Positions 6,915 to 15,814 of a stretch of 64,000 nt of DNA are shown in pieces (the stretch's first letter is position 1; every line of letters starts with the position of its first letter). The position numbers and the translations under genes are program-made. The stretch comes from Diplonema japonicum (Eukaryota; Protista; Euglenozoa: Diplonemea): the NCBI GenBank assembly GCA_964019335.1, contig OZ025744.1:124001-188000 (forward strand), read 5' to 3'. The notes beneath the pieces were generated by a model. The model worked only from the letters and a program-made list of their open reading frames with translations, was not told the origin of the DNA and searched no databases.

Positions 6915-9900
6915 TCATGCACCAAACCCCATTTGGTCAATAGGATTGGATACAGCGGGTTTGACCAAGGTGGGGTCAACACCATCAGAATATGTTTGGT
7001 CAGGCCACTGGATACGCAGAGTTCCGTCAGGGTTGGCCGAGTGCACCCGCCCGGTAGACCACGTTTCACCCCACTGCACCGACACATGCTCACCCACAAG
7101 ATGCTGGTTTGGAGAAGCAACCTGATGGTCTGGAACAACCGCAACATGGTGCGCGGGGTTCAGTCTCAACTCTGAAGGTGTCATCCCCGATGTAGCTGTT
7201 CCGTCCTCCCAACAAACAGTAAACCTACCATCAGGGTCGCTCTCAGTTATCACAGCAGGGAACCACTCTTCCCCGTGATACCCGAGAACCTGATCACCAA
7301 CACAAAACCTCCCCATTCCCCGTGGTTCGATGTCATCTGGGAGGACACCCTTCGTAACGTCACCATCGCCCCAGTCGATTATGTATGCCCCATCTTCCAG
7401 GCGGCCTCCGATTCTTCCCGACACCCATTCCCCGTTGTAGTTCACATCAACAGGTGTGCCGTCACGAAGCCCGGATATGTTCGAGTCTTGGTAACCTCCG
7501 GAGACGTCGGACATCTCGTAGGTGTTCCCGACGTGCTTCTCGTTTCTGTACGGGTTTTCAAACGTTTCGTCCGAACCGGTCGATTTTTCATTATTTGCTT
7601 GTTTCGACTTCCCCCCTCTGCACAGGACGAGAAGGATGATAGCCAAACATATTATTATCGCCATCGCAATGAGCAGCCAGAACCACCATTTATCAACAAT
7701 ATCGTCGTCGCTGCTAGACGTCGGGGACGGTGTCTGAAACACGACAGGGTCGTTGGTGGCGGGTACTGATGTTTGGATCTGTGAGGCTCCCCATGTTGAC
7801 GGCAGTACGCCGGCTTGCCCGCCGTTGACGTCCGACACCAAGAGCTGCTTCCCGTACGACCGCCTGTCGTTTGTTTTCTGCGACGTCTCGCTGGACACAG
7901 CCGATACAAGGTCGAACTCCAAATATGTGTCCGTAGCAGAGACCGTTGTCTGTAACATCTGCCCCATGTGCCGGGTTGCCGTTCCTGTGACACATCCTTT
8001 CTGAACAAAGCTCGACCTTGTCCGCGTGCATTGCATGTTCGGGCAGACCCCCCCTGGGCACATGTACAGCATCACAGGTTCGACCCCGGCAGGCTGAAAA
8101 AAAAAAATGTGGGTATTGTGTGTGTTTTCAGCATACCCCAACGACTTGTTTGACTGAATTCGCGAAGCCCGTCCACGAGAACTCCGCAAACGGTTTGTTC
8201 AATAGCATTCTGTACACTTGGTTGGAGAGGTTTTCAACGGCGGTGGGGATGTTGTCGGGCTGCGCAGAGGTGGCTGTAAAAAAAGAAATTTGAGGGGAGA
8301 GGGGGGGGGGGGAACATACTTGACTTCGCATAATCAGCAGCCACAGTTGGCGTCACACCCGTCAGCCTCTGGTACGCAGCAATGAGGTTCGGGAAGGTGT
8401 GCTGCTGTGACGCATAGGCGCCAGCGACCTGTCTGTTCACAGCAGTCGCGTTGGTAAGCGATACCGTGTTGACAGTGTGCTGCAGAACCGCCCCACCCGT
8501 AGCCGTTTGAAGCATGGCGTCCACCCTGCTAGGGTGCACCAAGTACGTCCCTGCAAGATCCTTCTCAGCGGCCACCTGCAATTCCGGAACATTCGACAGA
8601 GGGACCCTCGTCATGTCCAAACCGTTCAGCATTAAACTGCTAGATATCACGTACGTGGTGCTGTTCCCCTGCACGACTGTCGACCTTCCGTAGTCGATGA
8701 CGGGCTGTGCGTTGCCTGTCATGGCAGCATAGGCTTGAAAGGTCCGTGGGAGCGTCACAGTGTTTGTAGAGTGAGCTCTGTTGATGTTCTGTGTGAGGAC
8801 GTCTTGGTTCCCTAATGATGTCAAGTCGACGGTGTGGAAGACGGTAGTTGACTGTGCGTTGCTGTCTGCTAGCAGTTGAACGGCGACGACACTCTCCGGA
8901 ACGCCGTACGAGCTCGCAAGGTCTGTGACAGCGTTCCGCCTTAAGGTCTCCACGTCTGCTGTGCCTAAGGTGCTGATGTCCATCCCGTTGGCGATGACAA
9001 CACCCGGTACCACGACGGACTGTGCTGTTGGAGTTGGTGTTGTGCTCGACCCCGGGGGCAACGGTGTGATCGGCCCCGGAGCCGTCACAACCACGCTCGA
9101 GTACCTTACAACCCTGGTCCCTTTGCCCTGCAGCGGCCTTGCGTTTCCGTACAGCTCCATGGGGGACGGGATAGCGATGTTCCTTGCCCTACCGGCGGCG
9201 ATCTCGGCAGGGATGCCGAGTTTCTCTCTCAACACGTTCATCTGCCCTTGGCTCACTCCCATCGCTGACGCGTACACGTACCTCCTGACACCCTCTGTGC
9301 ACGGTGGTGTCGTCTCTGACCCGTCGTACATGTAAACACCTCTCTCAATCGGCAGCGTGCCGCCTATGTCAACAGGCACCCTCGTCACCTTGTTTTTAAT
9401 AGGAACCTGGTGCTGCGGATTGTCGAAGCGTGCCGCGGGGACCGTCGCGTCTGCGGCAGGGATGTCGTTCCAGAACTTGTCCAGCCACGTGTTGGCCGCG
9501 CTGCGTATCTCGTACATGATACTGACAGCAACGTGTTGCGAGTACCCCGAAGTGGGGATCTGCTCCTGCCCGGCGGCCGCTTTATGGTAAATTACCATTT
9601 CCATGGCCCATTTCCCGCCCCCAACAGCGTGTTCCCCCGGACTGTGCAGCTCGATATGAGTAATAATGTACCGAACACCACCCTGGTTGGGGTCGTTGAG
9701 GTACCCAGGAGGGTTCAGGAAGGTAAGTTTCAACCCGCCAACACCGTCGTTACGGATGGTCATCGGGTTCTGATCCCCGGTGGAGGAATATGTGTAGGTG
9801 AGGTCCCGCAAGGTGGTATCGAGAACACTACCGTCGAGGGTGACGGGGGACTGGTTGTTACCGGAGCAGGCAGGGTAGGTGAGCCTCCAGTTTGCAGGGC

Positions 9901-12900: not shown

Positions 12901-15814
12901 CACCGCATGAACCGGAACCTGATCCTGACGAAGCTGTCCCTCCTACAAGCTGGATAACATCGGATCTGCTGGTTGTAACTGTCGTACCTGGTGCAACAGG
13001 TGGGTTGACTGCGGTAGTGGCGCTTTCTACAGTTCCAGACGATGCGACACCACTGTCGGTGTACATTTGGACCACCCTCCCGTTCAGCTCCTGGGTGGGG
13101 CGGTTGTTTCCAAAGGTTTCGCATGGTTCCTTTGTGAACCCGTGCTTCGCTGCTTCCACCACCTCGTCATCTAATCCCATCTTGCCTCGGAACGCGCTCA
13201 ACTGCAGTGCAGACATCCCGACAGGCGTCGTGTAGACGTACCACCGCACACCCTCTGTGCAGGGCGGGGCTGTCATGGAACCGTCGTATGTGAAGAAGTC
13301 CTGGTTGCGAGGCAGCACACCAGTGAGATCGAATGTTTGAGTGATCTCCTGGCTGACCTTCGGGACGATCTCTGTATTTGTTGTGGTGTACAGCGTTGCC
13401 ACAGTTAAGGGTAGGCTTTGGAGATGCCCCCAGAAGTTTGCAAGCCACAGGTTGTCCGCGTCCTGAACGTCGAACAAGACCGCAACATGAAGGTACTTGA
13501 TGTGCGCGAACGGAGACGCGGTGGAGGGCTGGACAGGAGCTTCCTTGTGGACCATCACGATCTCCATGCTGCGGTGCCCCCCGCCAACAGCATGCTCGGA
13601 CGGACCGTGGAAATGAAACTCCATGAGATCAAATTTCTTCTGCCCCGAGTTGGCGTCCACCACGTAACCCGGTGAGTTCTTGAAGACAACCTTCATGACG
13701 TTCTGCCAGTTCTGCACAGTGAAGGAGCGCCCGCTCACGAACGCGTACGTCAAAGGAACAAGCTGTTCGTTTATCCTCGCCGTGTCGATGTGGACGGGAG
13801 CCTGTGCAGGACCGGATCCACACGTTGGGAACAGCGGTGTCGGGGTGACCTGGTCGGTTATAGTCCCCCAGTTAGAAGGGCCCTTACCAAGTACCTCAGT
13901 GTAGACCCATGGTTGGTCGTTGCATTGCACGTTCTGTTGGTGTGATGACATTGTTGTCCCCGGTGTGGACGGGGCATCGGGGGTTCTAAGCACCGTTCGT
14001 GCGCCAAGAGGTTGTGTCGGCCGGTTGTTCCCGAACATCGTGCACCTCTCAGGCGACCAACCAAGTTTCTTCCCCACGGCCAGCTCACCGGTGAAGTTCA
14101 TCGTGCTTCTCAAAAAAGCAAGCTGTCCACTGCTCACCGCAGCAGGCGTCGTAAACACGTACCACTTCATACCTTGCGCGCAAGGAGGCTGAGTGTGCGA
14201 ACCCTCGTATGTATAGTAACCCCTAGCTGCAGGCAGCGCAGCTTGGATGTCAAGAGCATCTGTGATACCTTTTCTCGCCCTTGCCACGAAGCCACTGTCA
14301 GGATTACTATATTGCACCTCGGGCTGTACAGGCCTTGATTGAAGATAGCCCCATATTTTATTAAGGAACGGGTTGTCAGGGCCGTTCTCGTTGTATAGAA
14401 TCGAGACACCAAGATAGCTGGGCACCGGGGGTGCACCGGAAGTCTGACCGACGGCTTCTTTGTGGATCAGCTGCATTTCCATGGGGAAGTGCCCGTTATC
14501 GATGGAGTGCTCCGAGGGGCTGCGGAAGACAACGGATGTCAGCTCGAACCGCTTCCCGACATTGGCGTCGACGATGTACCCCACAGGCGTGTTGAAGGTG
14601 ATCATAACGCTTGCACCGTCGTTCTCCAGGTTGTAGTTGGTGGACGTACCGTATTGAAAATCGAGGTTTTTAAGAGAAGCGGAGATGGTAGACGTTGAAG
14701 CAGCAAGATCGATAGGAGCCTGCTCAGAACCCCCGCAAGCAGGGTACCGCACCGTCCATGAAGACGGCCCCAACGATGATGTCTCTGTGTACCTCCACGG
14801 CTTTTGAATCACACCATCACAAACCTGCTGCGACGTCACAATAGTAGTGTCCGTTGCAGGCCGGACATCACCAACCTCCGCGATTCCTGACAACGTGTAC
14901 ATAAGGATTATCCGGTTATTCAAGGGCTGGACAGGACGGTTGTTCCCAAACACCTCGCAGGTGTCTATTTGGAAGCCGTACTGTCTTGCGACGATTGTCT
15001 CCTGGTCCAAACCGGACGCAGCTCGGAAGAGGGTCAACTGTGCGGTGCTCATATCAACGGGGTGCGCGTACACCACCCATTTCGCCCCTTCTTTGCACTG
15101 GTCCAACGGGGATGTCAATGAACCAGCGTAGGTAAAATATTCCCGTTCCTTACTCGAGTGCCTCCCTGTGCTCCACGGTTCAGGCAGAGCTGTCGTGAAA
15201 TCCAACGCGCTTGTCGTTGCCGTCACAGTTCTGAACGTGAAATCAGTGAAAGCATTGGCGTATAAAACGTCAGGGGTTACGGGTAGCCCGGGTAGGTTTG
15301 ACACAAACCGTGCGAGAAATGGATGGTCGGCACCAGACGTCGCTTTGAACAGAACTGTTGTCACAAGCGTCGGGTAAGACGTGAATGAGGTTGCGGTGGA
15401 GGGTTGAGTCAGACCGTTGTCCATGTGAACCGCTTGTATCTCCATGTCGGTGTTGCCGCTCGCGATGCTGTGCTCGGATGGTGCGTGTATGTCGAAGTAC
15501 CTCAGTGTGTAAGCCCGGCTTCCTTGGTTAGGGTCTGTCACGCCCCCCGCGTCCCCTGTGAACCTCACCCTGACGAATGCTTGCATGTTTACAATTTCGT
15601 ACCCCGCTGCGGGCTTGTAATCATAGACTAGCGGGACTAGCCCGTTGTCGATGGTTGCTTCTGTGATGGCCACGGGGCTTTGAGCTGAGCCCGAGCATCC
15701 CACGTTTGTTGAGCCCCACGAGTTCGGCCCCCTGTTGGAAATCGTGGAGTACAGCCAGTTCTGCTGCACGGCAACCACTGTGGCTCCTAAGAACACGCCT
15801 ATTGGGAAGCTCAT
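6915..15814 (-). CDS. ~2,936-aa type I membrane protein: signal peptide, 7 tandem alpha-carbonic anhydrase domains, stalk repeats, TM, 3 cytosolic Tudor/Agenet-like repeats; exons 8320-15814, 8137-8273, 6915-8093
   Basis: Seven repeats of W.Y......GP..W / QSP(V/I/L) / PSEH / YxGSxTxPPCxEG.xW / GNxRPxQ. Introns 8274-8319 (GTATGT..ACAG, phase 1) and 8094-8136 (GTATGC..CAG, phase 0) fuse ORFs 8234..16123, 8128..8331 and 6915..8189 in frame (8811 nt). TM: WWFWLLIAMAIIICLAIILLVLC. Confidence 0.85.

Follow-up and report, generated by a model that had tools for sequence, protein, structure and literature searches.

A diplonemid membrane protein with seven carbonic anhydrase-like domains, one canonical zinc triad and a predicted triple Tudor-like tail

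We analyzed a gene on the minus strand of a 64,000-nucleotide (nt) stretch of Diplonema japonicum DNA (assembly GCA_964019335.1, contig OZ025744.1, positions 124,001 to 188,000; hereafter the window), whose predicted product is a type I membrane protein of 2936 residues with seven alpha-carbonic anhydrase (CA) domains (D1 to D7), a stalk, one transmembrane helix and three Tudor-like barrels (table 1). We have high confidence in this overall architecture, and we consider it likely that no domain other than D5, which alone retains the H/H/H zinc triad, is a carbonic anhydrase. For the protein as a whole, we proposed a scaffold of receptor or adhesion type that has a single metal site left, a functional reading that we judge to have an even chance of being correct. 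In the ocean, diplonemids count among the most abundant and diverse groups of heterotrophic eukaryotes, and very little is known of their cell surface. Window coordinates are used throughout, and residues of the CA domains are numbered as in human CAII.

A Pfam scan of the long open reading frame (ORF) of the gene with Carb_anhydrase (PF00194) returned seven stretches with 751 bits in total (cut-off 27), and a six-frame profile search gave 83-138 bits per CA domain. The domain limits were set by the repeating W-x-Y...GP..W start and GN.RP.Q end, and the ligand positions were anchored by a phmmer alignment of D5 to the solved bacterial alpha-CAs 4c3t and 4x5s and carried through the seven-domain alignment. 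In this alignment, HFH...SEH...EMHIVH of D5 fell on HFH...SEH...E(A/M)H(F/L)VH of 4c3t/4x5s, and GSFTEPPC of D5 on GSLTTPPC. All seven domains carried (S/G)EH (Glu106-His107), Glu117, Thr199 in GSxT and the Cys23/Cys203 pair, and, with few exceptions, E106, H107, E117 and T199 recurred throughout the 35 domains that the window gene and its four orthologues have together. An initial annotation, made from the sequence alone, had described seven alpha-CA domains, had listed the zinc-ligand residues of each, with H/H/H in D5 only, and had noted the (S/G)EH motif, GSxT and the disulfide Cys in all of them; these residues read exactly as it had listed. All pseudo-domains have lost at least two zinc ligands, except D3 in the window gene and in the orthologue P0002 (H/H/V). 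The pairwise identity among the seven domains was 28-45%, indicating that the duplications are old.

The four orthologues, of 2,519-3,017 residues, aligned with 96-99% of the long ORF at 47-51% identity, and seven CA domains were observed in each. One of them (P0004) derives from a transcriptome of the diplonemid Flectonema neradi, in which it is a complete Trinity ORF, and has the same overall layout as the window gene; the annotated union of CA ectodomain, transmembrane helix and tail was therefore found within one transcript of a relative. P0001 and P0002 contain junk sequence in the stalk region, which looks like gene calling through an intron. The ligand pattern of the individual domains was conserved across the five species (table 1), which indicated that the domains other than D5 are conserved pseudo-enzymes and not decaying copies. 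The mean orthologue identity was 59.7% in D4, 57.9% in D5, 53.7% in D2, 52.6% in D3, 51.4% in D6, 49.5% in D1 and 41.0% in D7; thus, the check on orthologues that had been suggested against neutral decay showed conservation of the non-D5 domains, with D4 above D5. No stops or frameshifts were observed over 7.5 kb in the five species. A close relative (X1, 95-99% identical; four short contigs, none of which spans the introns) showed 18 differences, 9 synonymous and 9 non-synonymous, with 7 synonymous and 3 non-synonymous differences within D6 and D7, too few for a selection test.

In a maximum-likelihood tree without metazoan sequences, the 35 domains formed one clade (Shimodaira-Hasegawa-like approximate likelihood ratio test [SH-aLRT] 98), and each of D1 to D7 was an orthogroup of five (97-100). 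These results indicated that the array was made by internal duplication before the five species split and has been kept since. The nearest relatives of the clade were single-domain CAs of diplonemids (Flectonema, Lacrimia, Rhynchopus and Diplonema). Within the clade, D1 paired with D3, and D2, D4, D6 and D7 formed a loose group. In addition, the linkers after D1, D3, D5 and D6 share the motif S-G-I/V-A-x-x-G-x-V-x-x-A-T-D, whereas D2 and D4 are followed by short linkers of another kind. In conjunction, the linker motif and the two groupings hint at a repeated two-domain unit, from which the array may possibly have grown.

We addressed the conservation of the active-site cavity at 13 anchored positions (62, 64, 65, 67, 92, 94, 96, 119, 121, 141, 143, 198 and 200). 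The fractions of invariant positions (table 1) suggested two classes of pockets, those of D1, D4 and D5, which appear to be specific and maintained, and those of D2, D3, D6 and D7, which appear to be relaxed. The invariant residues include R64, H92, E94, H96, Q119, H121 and V200 in D4, and N62, N65, R67, N92, the three His, F198 and E200 in D5. D4 also bears an insert of ~45 residues (12550-12690) between the position-64 strand and the metal-site strand, with a conserved Cys pair in five of five species.

Table 1. Features of the seven-domain gene in the window, with the zinc-ligand residues and the pocket conservation of each CA domain (invariant cavity positions in five species, background invariance in the rest of the domain and p value).
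Feature	Position	Strand	Residues 94/96/119	Same residues, five species	Invariant cavity positions	Background	p	Remarks
Whole gene	6915-15814	-						Three exons; 2936 codons and a stop codon; same order of parts in the orthologues P0003 and P0004 (collinear)
Start codon and signal peptide	15764-15814	-						~17 hydrophobic residues; QQxWxY start of D1 directly after
D1	14894-15763	-	D/H/Q	DHQ, 5/5	8/13	32%	0.035	Likely pseudo-enzyme; pocket conserved
D2	13979-14803	-	V/R/Q	V-R/K-Q	4/13	35%	1.0	Likely pseudo-enzyme; Arg or Lys at His96 position
D3	13058-13915	-	H/H/V	x-H-V/I	5/13	35%	0.77	Likely pseudo-enzyme; position 94 varies H/Q/D among orthologues
D4	11927-12883	-	E/H/Q	EHQ, 5/5	10/13	41%	0.019	Likely pseudo-enzyme; invariant H92, H121, R64; most conserved domain
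D5	10985-11863	-	H/H/H	HHH, 5/5	10/13	39%	0.009	Sole zinc triad; conserved R64, R67, N92, F198, E200
D6	10034-10876	-	I/R/Q	I/T-R/K-Q	1/13	37%	0.037 (below background)	Likely pseudo-enzyme; drifting pocket residues
D7	9095-9934	-	E/H/V	E/T-H-V/I/M	2/13	23%	0.74	Likely pseudo-enzyme; GEH, not SEH; no C-terminal staple Cys; least conserved (41%)
Stalk domain A	8675-9013	-						Modelled ferredoxin-like/SEA-like alpha/beta fold; AlphaFold2 model m6ab9ba6dabdb, predicted local distance difference test (pLDDT) 79
Stalk domain B	8324-8650	-						Modelled fold as in stalk domain A; SorCS2 juxtamembrane domain, Z 8.7
Intron 1	8319-8274	-						46 nt, phase 1, GTATG...T-run...ACAG
Exon 2	8273-8137	-						137 nt; 45 codons plus two bases of a split Thr codon
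Intron 2	8136-8094	-						43 nt, phase 0, GTATG...T-run...CAG
Exon 3	8093-6915	-						Coding to 6918, stop 6915-6917; remaining stalk, SSSDDD, transmembrane helix, disordered spacer, three barrels
Transmembrane helix WWFWLL...LVLC	7620-7688	-						Exon-3 residues 136-158; hydropathy 3.49, sole segment over threshold
Tudor/Agenet-like barrel 1	7314-7469	-						
Tudor/Agenet-like barrel 2	7152-7307	-						
Tudor/Agenet-like barrel 3	6948-7103	-						Pfam SH3-C_UBE2O, 32 bits, over cut-off

The initial annotation had regarded D5 as the one enzyme of the array and as its only Zn-competent domain, lacking His64. In the alignment to 4c3t and 4x5s, the residue of D5 that aligned with His64 was Arg (Lys in P0001), in agreement with this loss. 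The idea of one enzyme stood only in part, as the triad of D5 is intact but its surroundings are atypical (R64, N92, F198 and E200); with His64 missing and Phe198 and Glu200 present, D5 is probably a slow enzyme, if it is one at all. In human CA III, activity is ~100-300-fold lower, and the changes blamed for this are His64-to-Lys and Leu198-to-Phe (PMC10128460); D5 resembles CA III in both respects, with Arg or Lys instead of His64 and with Phe198. The genome contains eight canonical single-domain alpha-CAs with HHH, His64, Gln92 and Thr200, indicating that bulk catalysis need not rely on the seven-domain protein. The claim of a single Zn-competent domain held for canonical ligands; however, the pockets of D1 and D4 are as conserved as that of D5, and these domains may use another ligand or another metal.

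The cysteines outside the core of the CA domains followed a strict pattern. One extra Cys was observed just before the GN.RP motif in each of D1 to D6 and none in D7, and exactly one Cys lies in each of the six inter-domain linkers, which are rich in Ser, Thr, Pro and Gly, a few residues before the next W-x-Y; none precedes D1, and the Cys counts were identical in the five species. We infer that the C-terminal Cys of domain n pairs with the linker Cys before domain n+1, the only pairing that would leave no free Cys. After D7, 258 residues were modelled as two beta-alpha-beta-beta-alpha-alpha-beta domains (mean pLDDT 79); the models covered each exon singly, and a putative third stalk domain extends over exons 1-3. 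A Pfam scan of this stalk, with the SEA profile included, gave no match, and Foldseek returned generic two-lobed ferredoxin-like matches only, with low TM scores. In an exhaustive structural comparison (VIA), the top matches of the stalk were juxtamembrane domains, namely SorCS2 (Z 8.7), MUC16 SEA5 (Z 8.1), TMPRSS6 SEA (Z 7.8) and a mouse protease SEA (Z 7.2), with further matches to TROP-2, dystroglycan and IA-2 and with SEA domains at ranks 2-8 (Z 6.6-8.1). At such middling Z values, the stalk may be called SEA-like, not SEA: it resembles the SEA stalks of MUC16, TMPRSS6, IA-2 and dystroglycan in its tandem juxtamembrane ferredoxin-like alpha/beta domains, but differs from SEA domains in the missing Pfam match, and the G/SVVV autoproteolysis motif was not seen in it.

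The transmembrane segment is preceded by SSSDDD and followed by the basic RGGKSK, and was modelled as a helix over residues 133-159. A hydrophobic N-terminus, one transmembrane segment and a positive-inside RGGKSK agree with a predicted type I single-pass topology. On the putative cytosolic side, a ~55-residue low-confidence spacer was followed by three five-stranded barrels (pLDDT 70-86) in structure models that were built on alignments of 3-5 sequences. Foldseek matched this tail to the triple Tudor of SETDB1 (E 3e-8) and to the tandem Agenet of AGDP3 and ADCP1, and to SGF29 and Spindlin, with E values of 3e-8 to 1e-4 and a probability of 1.0 for the top matches; the three cytosolic Tudor-like repeats that had been annotated were thus recovered as modelled barrels. 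In Pfam, the window tail passed only SH3-C_UBE2O (32 bits), with Agenet and Tudor_3 below threshold (23.3 and 22 bits, respectively); paralogous tail modules elsewhere in the genome passed Agenet (52.7 bits) and Tudor_3 (36.2 bits). The barrels have conserved W...Y/F-x-x-x-W-x-D-G positions (aromatics and Asp), a pattern in the sequence that is consistent with a putative aromatic cage.

A profile built from ten copies placed at least 48 copies of this module at a minimum of 35 loci in the genome. The module comprises ~50 residues with the consensus G-x-x-V-x-A-x-F-x-G-E-W-x-P-A...D-G-T-Y-x-I-x-W-G-D-G-T. Three loci were opened (L002, C53:57190-60504; L003, C24:549967-553314; L004, C71:326008-329310). 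Its carriers there were a type I membrane protein that is rich in Cys and has a PDZ-like region, a multipass membrane protein, in which one loop bears four or five copies, and a CK1-like protein kinase with two copies at the C-terminus. SSSDDD stands directly before the transmembrane helix both in the window gene (7689-7715) and its orthologues and in the otherwise unrelated Cys-rich protein of L002 (ORF residues ~118-126), and may serve both as a signal for sorting, processing or phosphorylation. Among the multi-CA proteins in the 150 best D5 matches, the tail was observed only in the diplonemid orthologues. Compared with the Tudor/Agenet readers (SETDB1, the plant AGDP/ADCP1, Spindlin and SGF29), the tail is alike in its consecutive five-stranded SH3-like barrels, three in this case, and differs in the relative barrel orientation (TM score 0.15-0.26). 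Known tandem Tudor/Agenet examples are nuclear chromatin readers, whereas the carriers of the module here are a CK1-like kinase and membrane proteins, in which it is predicted to face the cytosol.

In conjunction with these observations, we proposed that the alpha-CA fold serves mainly as a non-catalytic extracellular module of a conserved diplonemid type I surface glycoprotein, which would bind partners through dead CA domains, as PTPRZ/PTPRG and CA10/CA11 do. A disulfide at every junction would fasten each domain to the beginning of the following one, so that the array would form a stiff, beaded rod of ~30 nm. D5 would bind zinc and act as a slow CA or as a CO2/HCO3-/anion-binding site, not as a high-flux enzyme; the remodelled pockets of D1 and D4 might bind a specific ligand or another metal, and D2, D3, D6 and D7, with their drifting pockets, would be spacers or would use other surfaces. 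The tail would couple the protein to a lineage-specific cytosolic network through a module common to the CK1-like kinase and other membrane proteins. If this is correct, diplonemids have, separately from animals, converted the alpha-CA fold into an extracellular module that is for the most part non-catalytic, and have done so more extensively, since six conserved pseudo-domains surround a single metal site. The lineage-expanded Tudor/Agenet-like module on receptors, channels and a kinase hints at a signalling or anchoring system.

Several observations weigh against this proposal. When the six pseudo-domains were pooled, their cavities were no more conserved than the remainder (p=0.46), so that a ligand-binding pocket comes into question at most for D1 and D4, and the tests of single domains, with 13 positions and about four independent lineages each, are weak. 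Phe198 of D5 is also present in canonical, His64-bearing CAs of the genome and alone is no mark of low activity; the loss of His64 is therefore the stronger argument. The surface location and the disulfide staples are predictions from sequence, and the SEA-like call depends on Z values of 7-8.7, a range that unrelated models can reach. In a search of sequencing runs, none recorded as RNA was found, the runs that contain the locus being DNA contigs with the introns in place, and protein searches with exon 3 and with the region from D6 to the stalk, in certain length ranges only, yielded no D. japonicum transcript fragment.

A purely structural coat or adhesion protein is a possible, though rather unlikely, alternative. 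In such a glycocalyx rod, the CA folds would be stable disulfide-bonded knotted bricks, the tail would be an anchor, and the zinc site of D5 would have no catalytic or sensing role. The drifting pockets of four of the six pseudo-domains are in line with such a coat, as are the mucin-like or SEA-like stalk and the S/T/P-rich linkers. Against a coat, D5 keeps H/H/H and 10 of the 13 cavity residues in five species next to neighbours that lost the triad, and D1 and D4, whose pockets have been remodelled, show the same fixity there, with D4 as the most conserved domain of all. We consider it unlikely that the protein is a transmembrane sensor, in which D5, a zinc site without a proton shuttle, and the invariant remodelled pockets of D1 and D4 would bind CO2/HCO3-, another anion or another metal, and their occupancy would be passed through the stapled rod to the triple Tudor-like tail as part of a diplonemid-specific signalling chassis shared with the CK1-like kinase, channels and other receptors. 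If so, this would be the first CA-fold receptor outside animals and the first use of Tudor/Agenet domains in a cytoplasmic tail, with seven trefoil knots in series along one chain, and a sensing of inorganic carbon or pH by D5, D1 or D4 would bear on the perception of carbonate chemistry by heterotrophic plankton. Of the roles suggested in the initial annotation, a surface CO2/HCO3-/pH sensor, an adhesin or a local acidifier of carbonate-bearing prey, the last found nothing in the analysis that supports it specifically. The chain of an alpha-CA domain is knotted as a trefoil, and for a two-domain CA a composite knot has been predicted (PMC9278004); by extension, seven domains would give a seven-fold composite knot, and a nine-domain protein (P0015) would give more.

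We doubt that the protein is a multi-site extracellular enzyme, in which metals held by Asp/Glu-His-Gln (D1 and D4) or Glu-His (D7) would support CO2 hydration or another hydrolysis. Human CA II keeps some zinc binding, if weak, when a single first-shell residue is replaced, and the near-universal E106, H107, E117 and T199 and the invariant pockets of D1 and D4 would fit such an enzyme. On the other hand, two of the three ligands are lost in D1, D4 and D7, and it is first-shell changes such as H119Q, H119N and H94A that reduce zinc binding of CA II most (PMC10175565); moreover, Arg or Lys occupies the metal site of D2 and D6, and the eight canonical CAs are already available in the genome.

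The gene model joins three ORFs of the minus strand, 8234-16123 (2,629 codons), 8128-8331 and 6915-8189, of which the shorter two lie in other frames. Counted from the ATG at 15814, the long ORF comprises 2,526 residues, and all four orthologues open alike, with 14-17 hydrophobic residues followed by QQ(P/T)WLY. Upstream of this start codon, the ORF is open for 103 codons (15815-16123) with a poly-Lys, A/G-rich, low-complexity stretch, and an in-frame ATG near 16036 is not supported by any orthologue. The last base of exon 1 is 8320, and the pieces add up to 2498 residues, one split Thr codon, 45 and 392 residues, that is, 2936 residues; thus, the two micro-introns that had been annotated to join the three ORFs into a ~2,936-residue type I protein were recovered as GT-AG introns of 46 and 43 nt, with one transmembrane helix in the product. 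Exon 2 aligned with residues 2582-2617 of P0004 (E 3e-6), and exon 3 with residues 2634-3008 (36% identity, E 4e-76). In addition, a 49-nt GTAT...CAG intron of another pseudo-CA gene in the same genome is absent from the D. japonicum transcript P0053, indicating that micro-introns of this kind are spliced in D. japonicum; this intron, in a single-domain pseudo-CA gene, is largely an A-run. Taken together, the indirect support for the three-exon model is strong.

The assembly of this repeat-rich gene was supported by three DNA runs (Logan contigs X3-X5), whose contigs of 9,003-9,005 nt start at 6880 and showed zero differences across the compared 6880-12600; they are silent on splicing. Contigs of ~9,003 nt from 6880 would end near 15815-16123. 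An apparent joint of 9301 to 11205 in the DNA runs was rejected as a deletion, the matches being secondary ones of 24-30 nt between paralogous CA domains.

It is very unlikely that the main product is instead a secreted protein of 2,526 residues that ends at the 8234 stop, with the ORF of the transmembrane helix and Tudor-like tail as a separate gene or untranslated, or with an intron-1-retained isoform as the main form. If intron 1 is retained, the frame closes at the stop 8234-8236, 29 codons into the intron; no D. japonicum RNA was found over the junction, and the gene models of P0001 and P0002 were truncated in the same region. However, exons 2 and 3 are collinear with P0003 and with the uninterrupted ORF of the Flectonema transcript, the two introns agree in their GTATG...T-run...CAG ends and are in the right phases, the 49-nt intron of like ends is removed in P0053, and exon 3 has no start context of its own. 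Neutral decay of a formerly seven-fold active CA, which six broken triads out of seven and the low conservation of D7 (41%) might suggest, has next to no probability given the same substitutions in the same domains across species, intact domain orthogroups, an ORF free of stops and frameshifts over 7.5 kb in five species, a D4 more conserved than D5, and the ratio of 7 synonymous to 3 non-synonymous changes in D6 and D7 of a near-identical strain (a small sample).

The proposed scaffold resembles several known systems. In animals, dead CA domains bind partners, CA10 with neurexin and PTPRG/PTPRZ with contactins (PMC8024894). PTPRG and PTPRZ are likewise type I receptors with an outermost CA-like domain that has lost zinc ligands, and in the secreted CA10 and CA11 the domain is followed by a short tail with one conserved Cys (PMC8024894), akin to the one-Cys linkers here; CA8 is an intracellular example of a CA fold with lost zinc ligands that serves as a protein-binding module. 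In contrast to the single CA-like domain of PTPRG/PTPRZ and CA10/CA11, seven stand in a row here with one triad kept, and a triple Tudor-like module takes the place of the phosphatase domains of PTPRG/PTPRZ on the predicted cytosolic side. Since the diplonemid domains descend from diplonemid CAs in the tree, the likeness to the metazoan CARP/PTPR domains is best read as convergence, with catalysis lost independently. Human CA IX, XII and XIV share the type I topology and an extracellular CA domain, and D5 keeps HHH, E106, T199 and Cys23-Cys203; however, only one of the seven domains here could be catalytic, and D5 has Glu for T200 and Asn for Q92.

The initial annotation knew of no described seven-CA architecture. 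This stood as far as the literature is concerned: our search on diplonemids and multi-domain CAs yielded dual-domain alpha-CAs only, with no array of 4-9 domains and no diplonemid CA. The dual-domain proteins, DCA1 of Dunaliella salina (P54212, PMC9278004) and DDCA of the giant clam (PMC5879104), are alike in their tandem domains. It did not stand for sequence databases, as arrays of 4-9 alpha-CA domains were found in marine protists when D5 was searched with HMMER against 1.84 billion representative proteins and the best 150 matches were examined. These include eight HHH domains in P0006 (JGI/IMG), six HHH domains in P0005 (an MMETSP transcript), six domains with five HHH in P0008 and P0154 of the green algae Pseudoscourfieldia marina and Pycnococcus provasolii (NCBI name 'carbonic anhydrase'), nine domains with mixed triads in P0015 (JGI/IMG), six degenerate domains in P0029 (Logan), and a protein of 3,314 residues with at least eight mostly degenerate domains followed by Cys-rich repeats (P0157; JGI/IMG, Logan); P0009 is likewise one of these independent marine-eukaryote arrays. 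Among the 365 domains of the best-150 set, 239 are HHH and 81 have Gln119. Each array included in the tree clustered with itself, indicating independent amplifications. The seven-domain protein differs from them in that most of these arrays are HHH in all or most domains, and none has a Tudor-like tail among the 150 best matches.

Pseudo-CAs also occur as single domains. Those of the Gln119 type were observed in the transcriptomes of Lacrimia, Rhynchopus, D. ambulator and D. japonicum and in the genome annotation of D. papillatum. About six single-domain pseudo-CAs with Gln119 (EHQ, NKQ, RHQ, IHQ and IKQ) are present in the genome, at L010 (C32:262340-264939) and at L009, L011, L013 and L014 (C39, C46 and C10), and for two of them a D. 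japonicum transcript of 100% identity was found. The EukProt D. japonicum transcript P0095 was 100% identical over all of its 334 residues to a locus of the assembly, as expected of D. japonicum or a near-identical strain. Canonical single-domain alpha-CA genes (HHH, His64) form two tandem triplets, at C37:297706-303174 (L008) and C37:528617-532627 (L007); the three matches of L008 have identical scores, which suggests that this triplication is very recent.

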